Part shown: positions 11,523 through 20,105 of the stretch, piece after piece
Layout: the number at the start of each line of letters is the position of its first letter
How positions within the stretch are numbered: the first letter of the stretch is position 1
NCBI GenBank assembly: GCA_021613535.1
Contig: CP075493.1
Span: forward strand, 3,472,001-3,536,000
Reading direction: 5' to 3'
From: Adineta vaga
Lineage: Eukaryota; Animalia; Rotifera
DNA: 64,000 nucleotides
Made by a program: the position numbers and the translations under genes
Notes under the pieces: model-generated
The model's input: the letters and a program-made list of their open reading frames with translations, nothing else
The model's database searches: none
Told to the model about the DNA's origin: nothing

Positions 11523-14008
11523 ATGAATTCAACTAATGGTTCTCATTCATCATCGATAATGGATCATGAAATCAATGGTTTGTCTTGATATGTTTCGTTT
11601 TTATTCCTAGCCTTATTATTTCAGTGAGTATAAGAATAGAATGAATTAAAATTCGTAAGTATGTAAGTAATTTCTTTGTAGTATTAAATAACCTTGTAAA
11701 TAAAAGAGCGATTTACTTACATTTCATTTCTTGAGAGAAGTCCTTCATTCTTCAGTTGAAATTCTCCTAAGTTTGTATTATCTTATGTATTATAGAAGAA
11801 ACATTGATTTTGATTTTTTCATTTAGATACAACCAAACATGATCCAAACTTGATGATAATAATACCAATACATCGATTAATAAGCGTATAAAATCCAATA
11901 CTATTGTTTTAATTCCTGTCAATGAAACACAATCGATGAAAGGAATAAATCGGAAATCGAAATCAATCGATATGAAGACAAAAAAACTTCTTCATAGCGA
12001 TTCGAATAATAATACAAATTCAATAAAAAAAGTTCAAGAACAAATACATTCTTCTTCTTCCGAACACATTCCGTCAACATCAACAAATGCTTGTCAATCA
12101 TGTAGCGAAGATCGTAATGAACTGATCTTATGTGACAGTTGTCAAGGAACATTTTCTCATCGTTGTACGAAAGATTCATTTCTTTGTGATAATTGTCGAT
12201 CGAAAAGAAAATCAACTGATGAAAAAGAGAAACAACAAAAACTTATTTTACCATTTAATTTTACACCAAAAAAGAATTTACATATGAATGGTTTGAAAAA
12301 AAATCAAAAAGAACAGATCAAATTATCGACAGGTAAACGAATAAATTAAACGATTATTTCATTATCGAACTATTTGTTTAGCATCCAATGTTGAACCTTT
12401 AGTTCAACCATCGGGAGAGATTAAATTTCGTGCAATTAATAAAAGTGAATTTTCATCAAATCTCAAACGAAAACGAAATGATTCATCATCTCCACCACCA
12501 CCATCATCATCATCATCATCATCCACAAGCCTTCCAAATCCAACATCAATTTCTAATACTCAATTAAATATGTTACATCATTTATTTATTTCAAATCAAT
12601 CTGAAGAATTCAAAGCTCCGTCTTCATCATCGAACAATCTAATACTTCAAAAATTTTGTTTTATATGTCGAAAACCATCGATTAAACAAGGTCCATCAAT
12701 ACATTGTGATTATTGTCCATTGATATATCATCTGGACTGTTTAACACCACGATTAATTTCATTACCCAATGAAAAATGGATGTGTCCAAACCATGTCGAA
12801 CCTACTTTAGATCGTTATTTATTCAATAGAATAGATCATTCGATGAATCAACGAGTGAAGATTTGTCAACCATGTTCTTCAATGAAACAGGATATAATTG
12901 CACAAGATTTTAATCAAAGGAAACAAACGAAAAATTATTTTTTACTAAATACAATTCACAATCATCGATTGGAACGTGTAGATATTAGTCACATACCGGA
13001 AACTATCGCAGAATTTTATTCTAAGATCAATTCAGAACAAAGACAAATCCGTGAAATTTCAAAAGATAATCTCAAAAAAGAAATGAATTATCAGGTAAAA
13101 ATCAAATACGAGTACTAAATAGATGAATTGACTTAATTTAAATCTTTCTATTTTGATTTAGACAATTCTTCCTTCCAATGAAATCTCATCGACATATGAT
13201 CCATGCGTTTGGGATACACTACAAGACATTCTTAATGATATTATTAATGAAGATTTTTATAAATTCTCATCTATAGAATCTGTATCTATTGAGAATGATC
13301 ATAGTCTAATAGAATCTAGATCAACAATTGAAAATAATACACTCGATACAATCGATGTATTATTACAAGCTTTAGATGAACCTCATTATACTATCACTGA
13401 ATCTACAGAAAATAAATTAAATAATCTCAATCTTACTCTTACTTCTACAAATTTGTCGAAAGATAAATCAAATCTGTAAGCAAAATTTCATTGTTAATCA
13501 TTCATTTCTATATCTTTATGAATGTATGTTTTTTTCTAGAATATCATTAACAAATTCTTTCTCATTAATAAATGATCTTTCAGAATTTCATTCATCTCAT
13601 GCAGCTTTAATTCATTTATCTACTCAACATGTTATCTATCTACGTAAACATACGATTTGGTTTGGTTCATCGTCTAATAATGATATTTGTTTAACTGAGT
13701 TGAATTCGCTACATTCTTGTCAATATATATCCGAACGACATGCTTGTTTATATTATGATCGAAAACGTAATTTATTTGAATTATTAAATTATAGTGAATA
13801 TGGAACAATTGTCAATGATCTTCGTTATGGTTTAGAATTTGATTTGAATTCAATGAAGAAAATTGAGAATGAAAATCAACATCAATGTTCTTGTTTAACG
13901 AAATCTTTCGATCAACCAGCATGGGATGGACCTGCTTTAATCGAACAAGGAACAGTAATTGACATTGGATGTCATCAATTTCTCTTTTACCGGCATATTG
14001 TCCGATAG
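11523..14008 (+). CDS. PHF12: PHF12-like protein (degenerate PHD1, PHD2, C-terminal FHA domain); 5' end uncertain or disrupted
   Basis: 'CFICRK..IHCDYCPLIYHLDCLTP..WMCPNH' PHD; FHA 'CQYISERHACLYYD..FELLNYSEYGTIVN..WDGPALIEQGTVIDIGCHQFLF'; introns near 12333-12381, 13094-13161 and 13476-13539. Confidence 0.8.
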
Positions 14009-16071
14009 TATCTATATAGCTATATATATTAAATCAATCAGAATTTTTTGTCTTTATTCCCTTGTATATATATACTCTTTTTGTTTTCTATTCAATGTGA
14101 ATGAACGAAACACTATTCTAATAATACTCATGATAGAGAGAGAAAAAAAAGAACTTAAATGACAAGATTCTTTCGTCTTATGTTTTGTCTGTTTTTGCTA
14201 TTGCGGATATTCTATATACATATATATATATATATATATGCATAAATAGTGTAGTATTCGAAAATCAACATGTGTTCTCATCGTTTATTTTTTTGCGTGT
14301 TATACATTTGTTTTCTTTTTCTTTTCTTTTCTTTTTTTTTATGTCACGTGTACTAGTAAAAAATACATGCGTGACTTGTTCTACACAATCAGAGAAAAAG
14401 AAATCATACGATCTATTGTCCATGAATGGACATGGCATTTTTTTCTAGTATGACAATTCTGTCATCTATTAGAATAGAAAGAGAAGATATTTCGAGGGAT
14501 CATAAGAAGGAAACTCTTGACTGATTGATTTGTAGTCCCTGGGAACATAACTTTTGTTAACCTAAATTTTTTTTTACTTCTCGGTTCAAAGTATCATTGA
14601 CATAAGTTATTTTCATTGAATTACTCGATTCAACTAGTCAAGAAACTAGATCAAATATTCATAGAGTATCGTTATGTTTTTCTCCAATTATTATATTCAT
14701 CTTGTTAACAATCACTTATCACATACTCAAGTTGTTTTTGATCTTTCTATTCTTTTCAGTACGATAATCTTTAAAGAAAAGCAACACAATCAAAACATAC
14801 ATATACGGTTGACACCATCATTATGATATGCTCACAACACTTTCATTTTAGCCATCAGGCAACTATTGGGTAAGTTACCTTCTCTAATCGTCTACTCGTG
14901 TATACGGATCAATAGATTATTGAGTAGACTTGTCTGCCGTTCTACTGTTTTGTTATAAAGACTTACTTTCTCTAATCAACGTCATATGGCTTGAGGTCAT
15001 TAGTTGTTTCTGATCTATTCGGCATCGACCAGTCGACATCACTATTTCACATTGTTTCATACAAATAACAAAAGAAAATTTCGACGGACAAATGTTTATT
15101 AGAATCGATCTGTGTCACTGACAAAAATACAATTAGATAGATTTGACATTTCCATGTTCAACACTGTTCTTCGTTCTGATCTGTTAGAACGAAAGTGACT
15201 ACTGCTTGATTATTAATAAGCATGAAATGTAGACACAATGATTCCGACGCTGAGCCAAATCAAATAAGTTGTCTACCTATTTTCAATAGGAGAAGTTAAT
15301 AGAGTTTTGTTTTCGTCAAATTCACGAGCAGAAGGTGTGGCACCGGATGAATATTTGATTGACTGCAGGTGTAAAGAAAAATCTTTTTGCGTGCTGTGTG
15401 ACTACAATTCAATATTGTGCTTCCTGTACAATGGTTCATTCATTGTATATGAAGATGATAAGTAGGTGGTACAAGGCATCGCGTGTCTATAGACTGAGAA
15501 AATCGACTAGACATACTACTCAAAATGTGCGAACAATAGTATTCGATAGAGATTTTAATCTTTTCCATTATATGCACGTGTACTGCTAGACAAAGAAACA
15601 ATAAGAATCTACATTTCTAGATTGTCCAATAACCTGATAAAACTATCTTAAAGGTCACTTTTGTTTTTTTTTAAATTTATACGGTTAATTGTGTCATAAC
15701 TGATCAGTAAATTAGAAGATTATGATGTCAATCAAACAAAATATTCGACGAGAAGAGATTATTCTCATCGAACATGTCGTGTTTTCTTTGAATGTATAAA
15801 TCGCATGATGTAACCGTTATTCCTAATTGTTTTGAAAACAAGAAAAGAAAGTGTTCCGCTCTCTAATTTTATCGTTCGATGAAAACATAAGAGAACGGAC
15901 AGAAAAAGAAATCTAGCGAATAGAAATGTCTTGTTCCTCCAATCAATTAACGTTCCATTTTCGACATTTCTTTTTCTTTTCTTCTCCTTTCCTCTTCTTT
16001 CTCAATCATCTCTCATTTTCCATTTCAATCAACACAACAATATAACATAGTCATATTTGAATAGAAAATCA

Positions 16072-16441
16072 ATGATGACAACAATCACCTTATCGCCCGG
16101 AAAACATTGTTTTACATCATCACCATCTCATTTAAAGAAACGTCATACGTTACCAATGTTAACAAATGGAAATCTACCTGATCTGTTAAATGATATCTTC
16201 ATTGAACAACAACAACGTCAGAAAACTATTGTAAATATTGCAACACTCTTAAGAAAAGTTGGCGATCAAATGGATGAACAATTACAGGTAATTTTTGTTA
16301 ACTTAGAGACTAATTCCTATCATTGAATCTTCTAATTTTTAGATTAACAATAATGTCATATCATTAGATGATTGTATATTTGGTCAAGGAACGCTTATAT
16401 TTATCACATGTGTATCTCATGTACTACGTTTTTTCTTGTAA
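16072..16441 (+). CDS. Candidate BH3-only (pro-apoptotic BCL-2 family) tail-anchored protein, 104 aa (exons 16072-16287, 16343-16441)
   Basis: 'IATLLRKVGDQMD' fits the BH3 consensus; 55-nt phase-0 GT-AG intron; hydrophobic C-terminus 'TLIFITCVSHVLRFFL*'; AATAAA at 16559. Confidence 0.7.
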
Positions 16442-16464
16442 TCTTTTAATTTTAATTCTTGTTC

Positions 16465-16564
16465 TTTGACCCGGTTGTTGAATGAATGGTGCTAGGTAGC
16501 ACTTGACTTGTACATAATTATGTGTTTTGTTTTCTAATATTTATTTTTCAATATATAAAATAAA
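16465..16564 (+). promoter_or_regulatory. 3'UTR motifs: CCCGGT (16470-16475), miR-29-family 8mer TGGTGCTA (16487-16494), Pumilio element TGTACATA (16509-16516), polyA signal (16559-16564)
   Basis: Exact motif matches clustered within about 75 nt after the stop codon; function not shown. Confidence 0.4.
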
Positions 16565-19500
16565 ACATTGCATTCCTAAAGAACATTTGACTTGATCTTA
16601 TCATAAATTTAATCTCATAAACAAACTATCGAATAAAACTCATTTGTCACCTTGTTTTTAATTCGATCAGCAAGTGTCATTGACTTATCACTCTTTTCCT
16701 AGGTGACACGTGTCTTGTCATTGACATGAACATATTTTTGTCTTCAAATGTGTGAAAACGGATGGTTATCATCCATATTTGATTAGGTCATTGAAACAGA
16801 AATGGTCAAGTAGTGATCATCATCATCTTAACATTTGCCTGCGAGATAATCAAGCAGAAAACAAAATGTCATCTATACCGATAGTCATTTTCATTCTTTG
16901 TCTTTGAAAAATGAGATGCTTGATTTTTGACGAAACCGTCACCGCCTTCTCCTTTTTGTCTTTGATCATCAATCGATAAGTGTCTTATATTCGTTGTCAT
17001 ATCAATTTCATTGCAGACCGCATTATTTTCTCTGATAGTGCGGCTATGGGTGGTTTCTTTTTCGTTTACAATTTGATGTTCTTGTTCTATTAACTAAAGC
17101 CGAATACTACAAACTTTGATGTATCACTATTGAAGAATATTAAAAATGGCACGTGCGTTTCAAATTTCATTCGATTTTCAAAATTGAAAAAAATAATATG
17201 ATAAGTCTATCGTAGTTTTTTGTCAGCATGATATATATCTAATTAAAAAAGTGTGTACTCGATACCTTACGGTATATTGATCGATTCAACTGATATGTTT
17301 ATGGATCGATTAAATCATTCGATAAACAAGTTTATTTTGTCGTCAATTGATTTCGATCTTATCACATATCATAAGACTATTACCTAGTATCAAGTTAATC
17401 ATCCGATTACCTCATACAGTATATCTTGTTAGTGGGTGTTCTATTGAAAAAAATTGGCTTGCATTCAATATTCAGGTGTTAAATATCATACTGAAATATC
17501 AAAAAAGAAAAAAAAATGACAGAATCGGTAGCATCAGATTGCGAAAATGAATATTTGCGCAAGAATGATTCAATTTATTCATGCTTTATTTCCCGACGAA
17601 ACCACTCATAAATCAATTAGCATTTATGTTTGTAGAGGAAAACATCACTATGAGAAAATATCCAGGATAATTAGTCAAATCTAATCGGATAGAACGATTA
17701 AGACGAAGCTAGTGAAAGAAGTGTTTTCATGATGATCGAAGAGTTCATTCGTTGTTCTCTTTTTCAAAAGAAGAAGGAAAAAAAAACATGACCTTTTAGA
17801 TTTGCCTTTTTTGTTGTTTCGTTTATCATAGCAATCTTTTTTTGATTTTATGATTTAGAAAGAAAAGGAGAAGAAAAAAGGAGTTCTTAATGAATGTTAT
17901 TCTTCTTTATTTGCACGATTTCTTCTATTTTGTTCCTCTATACTATAGATAGTTAATTATGTTATTATTTCTGTTTTATTAGCTTTTATTATTATATGCA
18001 TCGGATACTAAAGATCTAGGTAACAAAAAATATTATAGTCTATTATAGGAGATTGTCAGAAATTTGATTAGATGATACATTTGAACGGTCATGTACGAAG
18101 ATAAGAATTACAAATGATCAATGGAAAAAGCATAATTTAAATGTTATTTGTGATATTCTCAAGGGAAGAAAAGTACTATTCAAAAATAGGAACAAAGGTC
18201 TTGATAAAAACAAATTATTCTCGAGTCTATGACACACTTCACATCTGTGTCGTTGAAATTTGTATCGTACACGATATTTTGATATAAGATACTACTAAGC
18301 ACTGCAAGTAAAAGAGTTGTAATAGTAACTATAAGATAAACTTTCGTGGCACATCACAAAGTTATATTGATAGAATAAGAAGAATTACATGAAATTTATG
18401 CGAAAGGTCAACTGGAGGATTGTTCGAGTGAAGATTGATATTCAAAAAGAAGAAGAGAATGCGAATTACTCGTCATAATCATTATTGTGAATATTAGTCA
18501 TCGAGTTTTTTTTTTCCATTATCTTCAATTCCATTGGGAGATTATTGTCGTAAAAGAATCTTCTTCTATAGAGCTGAGACAACCTTCAATATCAATGACT
18601 TGATGATGTCTTCAATGCGTTGTTTTCGAACAAAGAAAAATGGTATGCATTAGGATTTATTTATCTCATAGAATAATTTTTGACGAATTAGATGATTTTT
18701 ATCAATCAATGACTAGTCTTATTATATCATATTCGATGGATTATTCTCAAAAAATGCCTTTTCATTCGTTTTCTTTTTCAATTTCGAAAGTATACATTCT
18801 TTTCTTCGGATGAAAAAGAAAAAAACTTCTACATTTTTTTCTCATTGATTTATACATAGTTTATTGTATTACTTTTTCTTCTTATTTCTTTTTTCTAATA
18901 GTGTTTTTCAACATCAATATTATTATTTAAGTTGATTCATATTCATTGTATCGTTCCCATGTACTCAATGAGAATATTTGTTACTATTACCATCAATAGA
19001 CGTAGATTGCTTCATTCGTTCGTCTTTGTGTATATGAAGAATATGGTATATAAAAAGCAATCACCAAGTCAAACGACATTTTTCACGAGAAGAAAAGAAA
19101 AAAAAACATGCGTTACAGAATGGAATATGGAAGTACAGTTTAGTTATCGTCTTTCTGTATCCTGTCACATAGGCTTAGAAACCGATAAATACATATATAT
19201 TCATTAGTCGATCTTATTGTCGTCATTGTAGGAAAGTGGGTAGAAAATGCTGAGTTATGCGTTTGTTTTTTTTCATACGCACTTCTCTGTCTCTTTCTTC
19301 TTCTTCTTCTTTTCTATCTGCATCTCTCAGGAGAAAAAAACGAAGCAGCAGAAGTAGTAGTAGACGAAGAAGAAAAAAGGAACAGATATGATAGATAGAA
19401 GCACAGCAAGCCAAAATAAACTTTGCTCTTCTTTTCCTTTTATTCTTCTTTTATTGATGATACGCCATACAATTGAGACATGGTGTCCATCTTTCGTGAA

Positions 19501-20105
19501 ATGTTAAGGTCAATTGATCATTCTCATGTATATATTTAGTTTTCAAAAAAAAAGTCTTCATCTTTTCATAGATCATTTTTCTAATTTTTCATCACAACAT
19601 ACAGTTTGCCGGTCAATGAAATAGTGATGTATTCCTTGTTCTTTCTTCTTTTCTTTTTTCTATTATAAATATATATATATAGATATATACGTATATATAT
19701 ATGTATACGCAGTACCGAAAGAAAAAAGGAAAGAAGGTCACTGGCGGCGGGCGATTACTTGTTGTTGTTTTTGTAGTTAGTCGTAGATAACAAGCTGCCA
19801 AAATTCTCGATCATACAATTACTCATTCTATCTCATCTCATTTTTTTCCTTCTTGCTTCAAACTCGTTCATCTTCCATTTCAGATATTCGGTGTATATAA
19901 GGATGCTATGCGCACATCTCGACTCTCCTTTAGGCTACCGCAAATCGACACAGACCGTTAGACAAAATGAAAAGTGTGCACAGCTGTGTCAGTGCCAGCC
20001 TAGAGGATAGACAAGAAGAAAATCAGAAATTGTTGTTAAATACAGCTGTGGCTAAAACGTTCCTTTTTTTGTGTGGTTTTATAGATTTATTTTTAACGAA
20101 TAATA

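Follow-up and report, generated by a model that had tools for sequence, protein, structure and literature searches.

BH3-only proteins are the sensors that set when the BCL-2 machinery kills a cell, and they are largely unidentified outside vertebrates, nematodes, Hydra and schistosomes. None has been reported in the whole of the Mollusca (Li et al. 2017, PMC5550854). Lineage-restricted BH3-only proteins, of the kind found in Caenorhabditis elegans (EGL-1) and in schistosomes, escape cross-phylum sequence searches, and the encoding of the BH3 within a single exon is used as a criterion for recognizing them (PMC8998228). For the bdelloid rotifer Adineta vaga, three BCL-2 proteins have been counted and no BH3-only protein listed (Banjara et al. 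2022, PMC8998228). The species is reported to lack p53, and is judged unlikely to resort to apoptosis once irradiated or desiccated (Moris et al. 2024, PMC10809525).

We analysed a gene lying in a 64,000-nt stretch of A. vaga DNA (the window, G000 C1:3472001-3536000, in the 100.8-Mb, six-contig reference genome G000), for which an initial annotation had proposed a BH3-only apoptosis trigger. It is a real, expressed and spliced gene whose small protein is under purifying selection. The protein is probably a bdelloid member of the BH3-only type, that is, a ligand of the BCL-2-fold groove with a pro-death role, and rotifers thereby gain a first credible candidate for a trigger of cell death under BCL-2 control.

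A trans-spliced gene of three exons

The two-exon open reading frame of 104 amino acids proposed from the sequence is as claimed in sequence and translation, and the spliced model is identical to the NCBI hypothetical protein I4U23_001036 [Adineta vaga] (P0001). This database record was used for whole-protein analyses, and all other analyses were performed exon by exon. The mRNA has three exons, however, the 5' exon having been missed. RNA contigs from four runs (X1-X4) of 2 studies were compared with positions 13800-18800 of the window. The predicted 16287/16343 junction is spliced in contigs of X1, X2 and X4, that is, in three runs covering the 2 studies. A further joint, 14869|16065, which skips 1195 nt, is found in RNA contigs of all four runs, and the gene therefore possesses an additional 5' exon (14760-14869). 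A single X1 contig of 520 nt extends from the end of a spliced leader through both joints and beyond the stop codon to 16518; it opens with nine letters foreign to the locus, CTTACCAAG, directly before 14758. The presence of the spliced-leader end before 14760 means that the mature mRNA, trans-spliced with the spliced leader, starts at 14760. Only two copies of exon 1 exist in the reference genome, both with the intron, so the joined form represents RNA rather than a retrocopy. Single contigs depart from the reference at two positions (16227 T>G, 16423 A>G), in both cases with a change that reads as synonymous. The features of the locus are as follows.

14758-14759, plus strand: AG acceptor for spliced-leader trans-splicing, placed by the loose letters CTTACCAAG in the X1 contig
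14760-14869, plus strand: 5' exon (leader), with an ATG at 14823; RNA joint in four runs
14870-16064, plus strand: intron 1, 1195 nt, GT..AG, absent from RNA contigs
15330-15570, no strand assigned: conserved non-coding element in intron 1 (alignment A3, 7 loci including the C4 ohnologue)
16065-16287, plus strand: exon 1, with annotated CDS from 16072 (72 aa); RNA contigs and NCBI record
16135-16155, plus strand: basic cluster KKRHTLP, residues 22-28 (alignments A2 and A7)
16174-16218, plus strand: second conserved block, LPDLLNDIFIEQQ.., in the N-terminal part of the long helix (alignments A1 and A2)
16237-16275, plus strand: BH3 motif I56-D68, with h1 I56, h2 L60, h3 V63, G64, D65 and h4 M67
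16288-16342, plus strand: intron 2, 55 nt, GT..AG, phase 0, spliced out in X1, X2 and X4 contigs
16343-16441, plus strand: coding part of exon 2, 32 aa and stop; RNA contigs, conserved in relatives
16391-16438, plus strand: C-terminal hydrophobic segment T89-L104 (Kyte-Doolittle; AlphaFold2 helix 82-103)
16442-16564, plus strand: 3' UTR, covered by the X1 contig to at least 16518, with AATAAA at 16559-16564
16642-17177, no strand assigned: downstream conserved non-coding blocks, aligned with ohnologue L015; no RNA contig in 4 runs

The AATAAA at 16559-16564 is a putative poly(A) signal, and parts of the 3' UTR are conserved in relatives. The sequence CTTACCAAG followed by AG and a GT donor has 54 genomic occurrences, as against 2 for the reversed control, and the leader end sits in paired genes that read ..cttattacaacttaccaagag|gtaaat. 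We take the leader ending in CTTACCAAG to be the one that Pouchkina-Stantcheva and Tunnacliffe (2005) reported from bdelloids. The bdelloid spliced leader is given as 23 nt long and present on more than half of bdelloid mRNAs in a passage of PMC1925144 that cites earlier work. The head-to-head arrangement of spliced-leader RNA genes, with the leader exons 168 nt apart, is found in the pair L016/L017 (G000 C1:1639465-1639645) and in about 26 further pairs, many of them clustered at C5:9.88-9.93 Mb.

Reading from the trans-splice site, the first AUG falls at 14823, within the 5' exon. It shares the frame of the main open reading frame with no intervening stop, and a start there would add 18 aa to give a protein of 122 aa. 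All relatives start at the annotated Met. The ATG at 14823 is missing from L012 and L010, the nearest relatives with DNA available, so the 18-aa extension is not a family feature and was ruled out as a conserved one; the 14823 start may be used in A. vaga itself. In both of these relatives the 5' exon ends in ATG-TA (L012, ~1295-1308; L010, ~1010-1022), which creates a two-codon uORF (ATG TAA) across the exon-1 junction.

The gene had been placed in a gene-free region of 6 kb. This description holds for the ~3.5 kb downstream, where there is neither an open reading frame nor an RNA contig in the four runs, but not for the upstream side, where the transcript of a PHD-finger and FHA-domain gene on the same strand (12570-14392) reaches 14392, 370 nt short of the trans-splice site. 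The width of this gap raises the question of co-transcription. A PHD+FHA gene also precedes the family gene in other bdelloid contigs, and one adjoins the ohnologue.

A candidate BH3 helix under constraint

The CDS of exon 1 (16072-16287) encodes 72 aa and ends in a 13-residue motif, I56-D68, followed by EQLQ. The motif reads I56-A57-x-x-L60-x-x-V63-G64-D65-x-M67-D68 and has the four spaced hydrophobic residues, the small residue, the h2 Leu, and the small residue plus Asp after h3 expected of a BH3 helix. It lies wholly within exon 1 (16237-16275) with junctions supported by RNA, and is thus a single-exon BH3.

The motif is present as the initial annotation described it, and it is conserved across 17 bdelloid sequences spanning the family (alignment A7), in all of which its Leu and Asp are invariant. 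Six columns of this alignment are invariant, of which five fall in the BH3 helix (I53, A57, L60, R61 and D65), and conservation is 90% or more at I56 and D68. Most members have G at the small position 64, whereas three Rotaria paralogues have S there and a single divergent member has A, so the G-D pair, whose loss in relatives would have spoken against a BH3, retains its Asp throughout and varies at Gly only to S or A. In alignments A2 and A7, only V and I occupy h3, and only M, I, L and V occupy h4. As read from these alignments, the pattern of substitution at the motif is what a BH3 needs.

Codon analysis of the 21 BH3 codons in eight loci gave a pS of 0.48, a pN of 0.09 and a pN/pS of 0.20; the corresponding pN/pS values are 0.15 for the LPDL block described below and 0.59 for the tail. 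Synonymous change is near saturation in the segments with pN/pS of 0.15-0.20, and the invariant L, R, K, V and G residues are each encoded by two or three synonymous codons. The window contains a single match to a strict BH3 pattern, against rough chance expectations, for a pattern written after the sequence was seen, of 0.0009 per window and ~1.4 per genome in six frames. With ~1.4 chance matches per genome, the motif alone is therefore not significant genome-wide, and the case rests on expression, conservation and architecture.

Distribution of the family

An ohnologue on C4, I4U23_020601 (138 aa), retains the BH3, the tail, the exon 1 end and the position and phase of the intron. Next to it lies a duplicate of the PHD+FHA gene that precedes I4U23_001036, and this C1/C4 synteny agrees with the known ohnologous chromosome pairs of A. 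vaga. A GT donor directly follows the last exon-1 codon in 8 of the 8 loci with DNA (counted by script), and a phase-0 intron of 48-64 nt followed by a conserved exon 2 is found in the 7 loci with enough downstream sequence (the ohnologue and 6 others). The exon 2 consensus in relatives is ..FGQRTITFxxCLSHVLRFFL. P0001 carries one extra Gln relative to the aligned relatives.

A word search with the exon-1 profile returned 83 proteins, and all those with a species name are bdelloid: A. vaga, A. ricciae, A. steineri, Rotaria socialis, R. sordida, R. magnacalcarata and two Rotaria sp. The 83 matches extend to an E value of 2e-11, and no further match turned up below E 10. Where relatives lie in metagenome contigs, many of the gene calls are prokaryote-style and run into the intron. 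One metagenome source names a family member, P0006, as a 'late competence protein required for DNA uptake (superfamily II DNA/RNA helicase)', a name that has no support in its sequence. An exhaustive HMM search of 1.84 billion representative proteins gave 21 matches at E <= 0.001, including Didymodactylos carnosus, and no credible relatives outside the bdelloid family. The sole match from outside the family in this search, P0090 (1010 aa), was rejected as low-complexity noise because only its poly-Ser linker matches, in five stretches. The family thus appears, as far as HMMER can see, to be restricted to bdelloids. We found no description of this gene family in the literature searchable here.

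Resemblance to known BH3 sequences

No Pfam family scored above its cut-off for the family members tested. The only recurrent match to an apoptosis-related family was to BID (PF06393), for which several members scored 12.9-16.4 bits, short of the cut-off of 25; it covers model positions 58-104 of 191, the BH3 part only, and membership of the BID family was accordingly rejected. When the narrow profile A1 was compared with the PDB, 12 of 13 matches at E <= 10 were BID or designed BH3 peptides, the best at E 0.06. With the wide profile A7, BH3 peptides or BH3-bearing proteins accounted, by manual count, for 21 of 25 matches, led by a BID BH3 peptide (E 8e-4), two PXT1 BH3 peptides (2e-3 to 3e-3) and mouse BID (3e-3), and including BAX, BIM, BNIP5 and designed BH3 binders. 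Sharpening of the matches as the profile broadens from A1 to A7 would be expected of a shared functional core.

The ESM Atlas neighbours of P0001 belong to the PXT1, BIM, BMF, BIK and NOXA clusters (0.89-0.78), and the same set of neighbours was obtained with the Rotaria protein P0039, which is 64% identical to P0001. Since all scores lie below the tool's 0.9 line, each Atlas match alone is a lead only.

Protein regions outside the helix

AlphaFold2, run on P0001 with the family alignment, predicts a helix at residues 35-75 (pLDDT ~80) and another at 82-103, with a mean pLDDT of 62.7; the Atlas model has a pLDDT of 0.51. Residues 1-34 are predicted as disordered with no secondary structure, and pLDDT is below 50 for residues 1-24. 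The middle region of relatives is rich in indels and of low complexity. The protein is thus largely disordered outside the BH3, as BH3-only proteins are expected to be. The claimed lack of BH1 and BH2 also stands: the BCL-2 family model PF00452, sought for the fold and for BH1, BH2 and BH4, has no match at E <= 10, and the AlphaFold2 model consists of the disordered N-terminus and two helices.

A second block, LPDLLNDIFIEQQ.. (LPDL..EQQRR), is as conserved as the BH3 in most members, with LPDL, D41 and other residues invariant in alignments A1 and A2. It is absent from P0086 and P0089, the most divergent members, both of which retain the BH3. A resemblance of the block to the GIT Spa2-homology domain (GIT_SHD, PF08518) is best in the ohnologue, at 21.0 bits versus a cut-off of 21.1, and does not extend to P0001, which has no match to PF08518. 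Membership of this domain family was rejected, the score being below the cut-off and the matching block being lost in divergent members.

The initial annotation had expected conservation to peak at LRxxGD and at RHTLP, and had read the latter as a 14-3-3-type RxxS/TxP phosphorylation site. The peak at LRxxGD is present. In the basic cluster KKRHTLP, a site of [KR][KR]x[ST] type is largely kept in the family together with nearby Ser/Thr, and K23 is nearly invariant; the Pro, on the other hand, occurs only in two Adineta short forms, P0001 and P0079 (alignment A2), so that this part of the proposed site is not a property of the family.

The C-terminal exon is hydrophobic, as had been noted, but the tail anchor that was read into it is uncertain. 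The tail-anchored subgroup of BH3-only proteins (BIK/HRK type) is defined by a membrane span of about 18-22 hydrophobic residues. The hydrophobic end of P0001 runs for 15-16 residues. Its Kyte-Doolittle mean is 2.03 when taken over 15 aa but drops to 1.42 over 19 aa, a length over which most relatives reach 0.45-0.97. A conserved His and a conserved Arg lie within the segment, the Arg four residues from the end. Because the segment is short and moderately hydrophobic and contains these residues, the term 'tail-anchored' is not established, and a putative membrane-associating C-terminal helix is the safer wording.

Conserved non-coding DNA around the gene

Most of the length of intron 1 can be aligned with relatives at 67-88% identity. 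The element at 15330-15570 is 83% identical over ~235 nt to L012 and L013, from two other species, and 75% identical over 111 nt to the C4 ohnologue. Its invariant blocks include TGATTGAATGCAGGTGTA and GGCTAGACA..ACTCAAGTGTGAGAACAAT, the former containing CAGGTG, which is E-box-like, or CAG|GTGTA, which is splice-donor-like. Downstream of the gene, comparison with ohnologue L015 showed 91% identity at 16961-17016, 90% at 17139-17177 and 67% at 16642-16840. The blocks in intron 1 and downstream are putative cis-regulatory elements, although they may instead represent an unseen exon or RNA. An Rfam scan of 13500-20000 returned only far sub-threshold microRNA look-alikes in low-complexity DNA. 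A scan of the 3' region for bacterial promoters and terminators, which is irrelevant for a eukaryote, found nothing.

Potential partners and death machinery

Five loci with the BCL-2 fold (PF00452) were found in the genome, on C2 (9734219 and 11896114) and C5 (7733551, 8869405 and 12435443). L003 and L004 carry NWGR and GGW, and L007 carries a TWGK variant and GGW. In L004 (G000 C2:9732719-9736012) a BH3 of its own (IAYRLRLIGDQLD), NWGR and GGW are located on separate open stretches at ~1249-1790. L004, which has an ohnologue at C5:8869405, is a natural first candidate partner. Caspase domains (PF00656) occur at more than 40 loci, several in tandem clusters. No NB-ARC domain of Apaf-1 type (PF00931) was detected at E <= 1e-3 in a six-frame search of the whole genome, a search that an intron-rich Apaf-1 could escape.

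Discussion

The reading of the protein as having a lone single-exon BH3, no BH1 or BH2, a disordered N-terminus and a hydrophobic C-terminal exon withstood every computational test capable of refuting it, and we therefore favor a BH3-only type protein that binds the groove of BCL-2-fold proteins and promotes death as the probable identity of this family. Several observations weigh against this identity. BH3-like motifs are short, are known to converge and occur in non-apoptotic proteins, and the LPDL block, which is as conserved as the BH3 in most members, is without a BH3-related explanation. The non-classical tail, the sub-threshold Pfam scores, the Atlas scores below 0.9, the lack of an NB-ARC match and the conclusions of Moris et al. 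2024 also count against it.

A chance open reading frame in transcribed DNA, or an exon of a larger BCL-2 family gene, would be compatible with the shortness of the frame, the AT-rich DNA and the low contig depth. The notion that there is no functional coding gene here is nonetheless close to refuted by the one X1 contig that spans the spliced-leader end, both junctions and the stop and continues into the 3' UTR, by a pN/pS of 0.15-0.20 at near-saturated synonymous change, and by the conservation of start, stop, intron phase and both exons in many species. A more serious proposal accepts the small protein as real and confined to bdelloids but gives its conserved helix a different binding partner, with the BH3 likeness being that of an amphipathic helix with a G-D turn. 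The database matches are all weak in absolute terms, the strict pattern is expected ~1.4 times per genome by chance, the family is seen only in bdelloids, and the LPDL..EQQRR block is equally conserved in most members and weakly GIT Spa2-like (21.0 versus 21.1 bits, in the ohnologue). We nevertheless consider a look-alike helix rather unlikely, given that the residues that never vary are those that define a BH3 and that the small position admits G, S or A only. Moreover, P0086 and P0089 drop the LPDL block yet keep the BH3, the wider profile strengthened the BH3 matches rather than diluting them, and two divergent members (P0001 and P0039) share BH3-only neighbours in the Atlas.

Alternatively, the protein could engage BCL-2-fold partners through a genuine BH3 yet serve a non-lethal purpose, such as the control of mitochondrial dynamics, autophagy or stress recovery, in an animal that avoids apoptosis when damaged. 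The lack of p53 and the view that apoptosis after irradiation is unlikely (Moris et al. 2024, PMC10809525) would fit such a role, as would the unmatched NB-ARC domain and the retention of two ohnologous copies across bdelloids. Against it stand the large caspase family, the existence of canonical BCL-2-fold genes with BH3, BH1 and BH2 motifs, and the fact that the closest look-alikes are all killers; we regard a non-lethal role as unlikely.

If the protein is a pro-death BH3-only ligand, as we favor, the helix would insert I56, L60, V63 and M67 into the hydrophobic groove of an A. vaga BCL-2 homologue, and D65 would pair with the Arg of the partner's NWGR. Through its C-terminal segment the protein would be retained on a membrane, probably the outer membrane of mitochondria, in a manner that may be nearer to the basic hydrophobic C-terminus of BIM than to a classical span. 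Conserved N-terminal Ser/Thr-Pro sites and the basic-cluster sites could control activity, and the conserved blocks in intron 1 and downstream could control transcription.

More tentatively, we propose that a BH3-only family peculiar to bdelloids may be the switch at the head of a death pathway that is regulated by BCL-2 and independent of p53. The helix has the BID residues at all five groove-contact positions (I, I, L, V and M), and the surrounding non-coding blocks would be where the death decision is made. If this proposal were true, such a switch would exist in animals that are believed to forgo apoptosis when their DNA is massively damaged. The rotifer candidate would be a further spiralian example after the schistosomes. 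Its 13-residue helix and two gene copies offer a handle on whether BCL-2-regulated death works in bdelloids, and bear on how animals that survive desiccation and kilogray radiation hold such a switch off. The family also shows that motif, architecture and conservation together can find such genes where BLAST fails.

Comparison with known BH3-only proteins

The best sequence match is the BH3 of BID, which aligns in register with residues ~50-72 and is identical at I53, N55-I56-A57, L60, V63-G64-D65 and M67-D68. The similarity is confined to the BH3: BID, unlike the rotifer protein, folds into a globular bundle of helices (~195 aa), is switched on by cleavage and lacks a C-terminal tail. BID appears only from cartilaginous fish onward (Banjara et al. 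2022, PMC8998228), and common descent is therefore unlikely.

In architecture the gene is closer to BIM, BMF, BIK and HRK, with a disordered N-terminus, a single-exon BH3 and a separate last exon for a hydrophobic C-terminal helix, and its intron positions may resemble theirs in this respect. BIM, BMF and BIK are among the closest language-model neighbours, and a BIM peptide is among the PDB matches. The Pfam families Bclx_interact, BMF, bcl-2I13 and Harakiri gave no match at E <= 10. The rotifer protein differs from these proteins in being without a dynein light-chain motif and in having a tail that is shorter and less hydrophobic than a classical anchor. PXT1 is the top Atlas neighbour of both queries (0.89 for P0001 and 0.87 for P0039) and provides PDB matches 2 and 3, but it is a chordate protein with a peroxisomal targeting signal and has no detectable homology outside the helix.

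The BH3-only proteins described so far in protostomes, namely EGL-1 of C. elegans and those of schistosomes, are likewise small and lineage-restricted, with a lone BH3. No sequence similarity to them was found, and EGL-1, unlike the rotifer protein, has no hydrophobic tail. The egl-1 gene lies amid conserved non-coding blocks. The rotifer gene is similarly placed, and this parallel, including the invariant CAGGTG, provides a lead as to how expression of the candidate trigger might be controlled.
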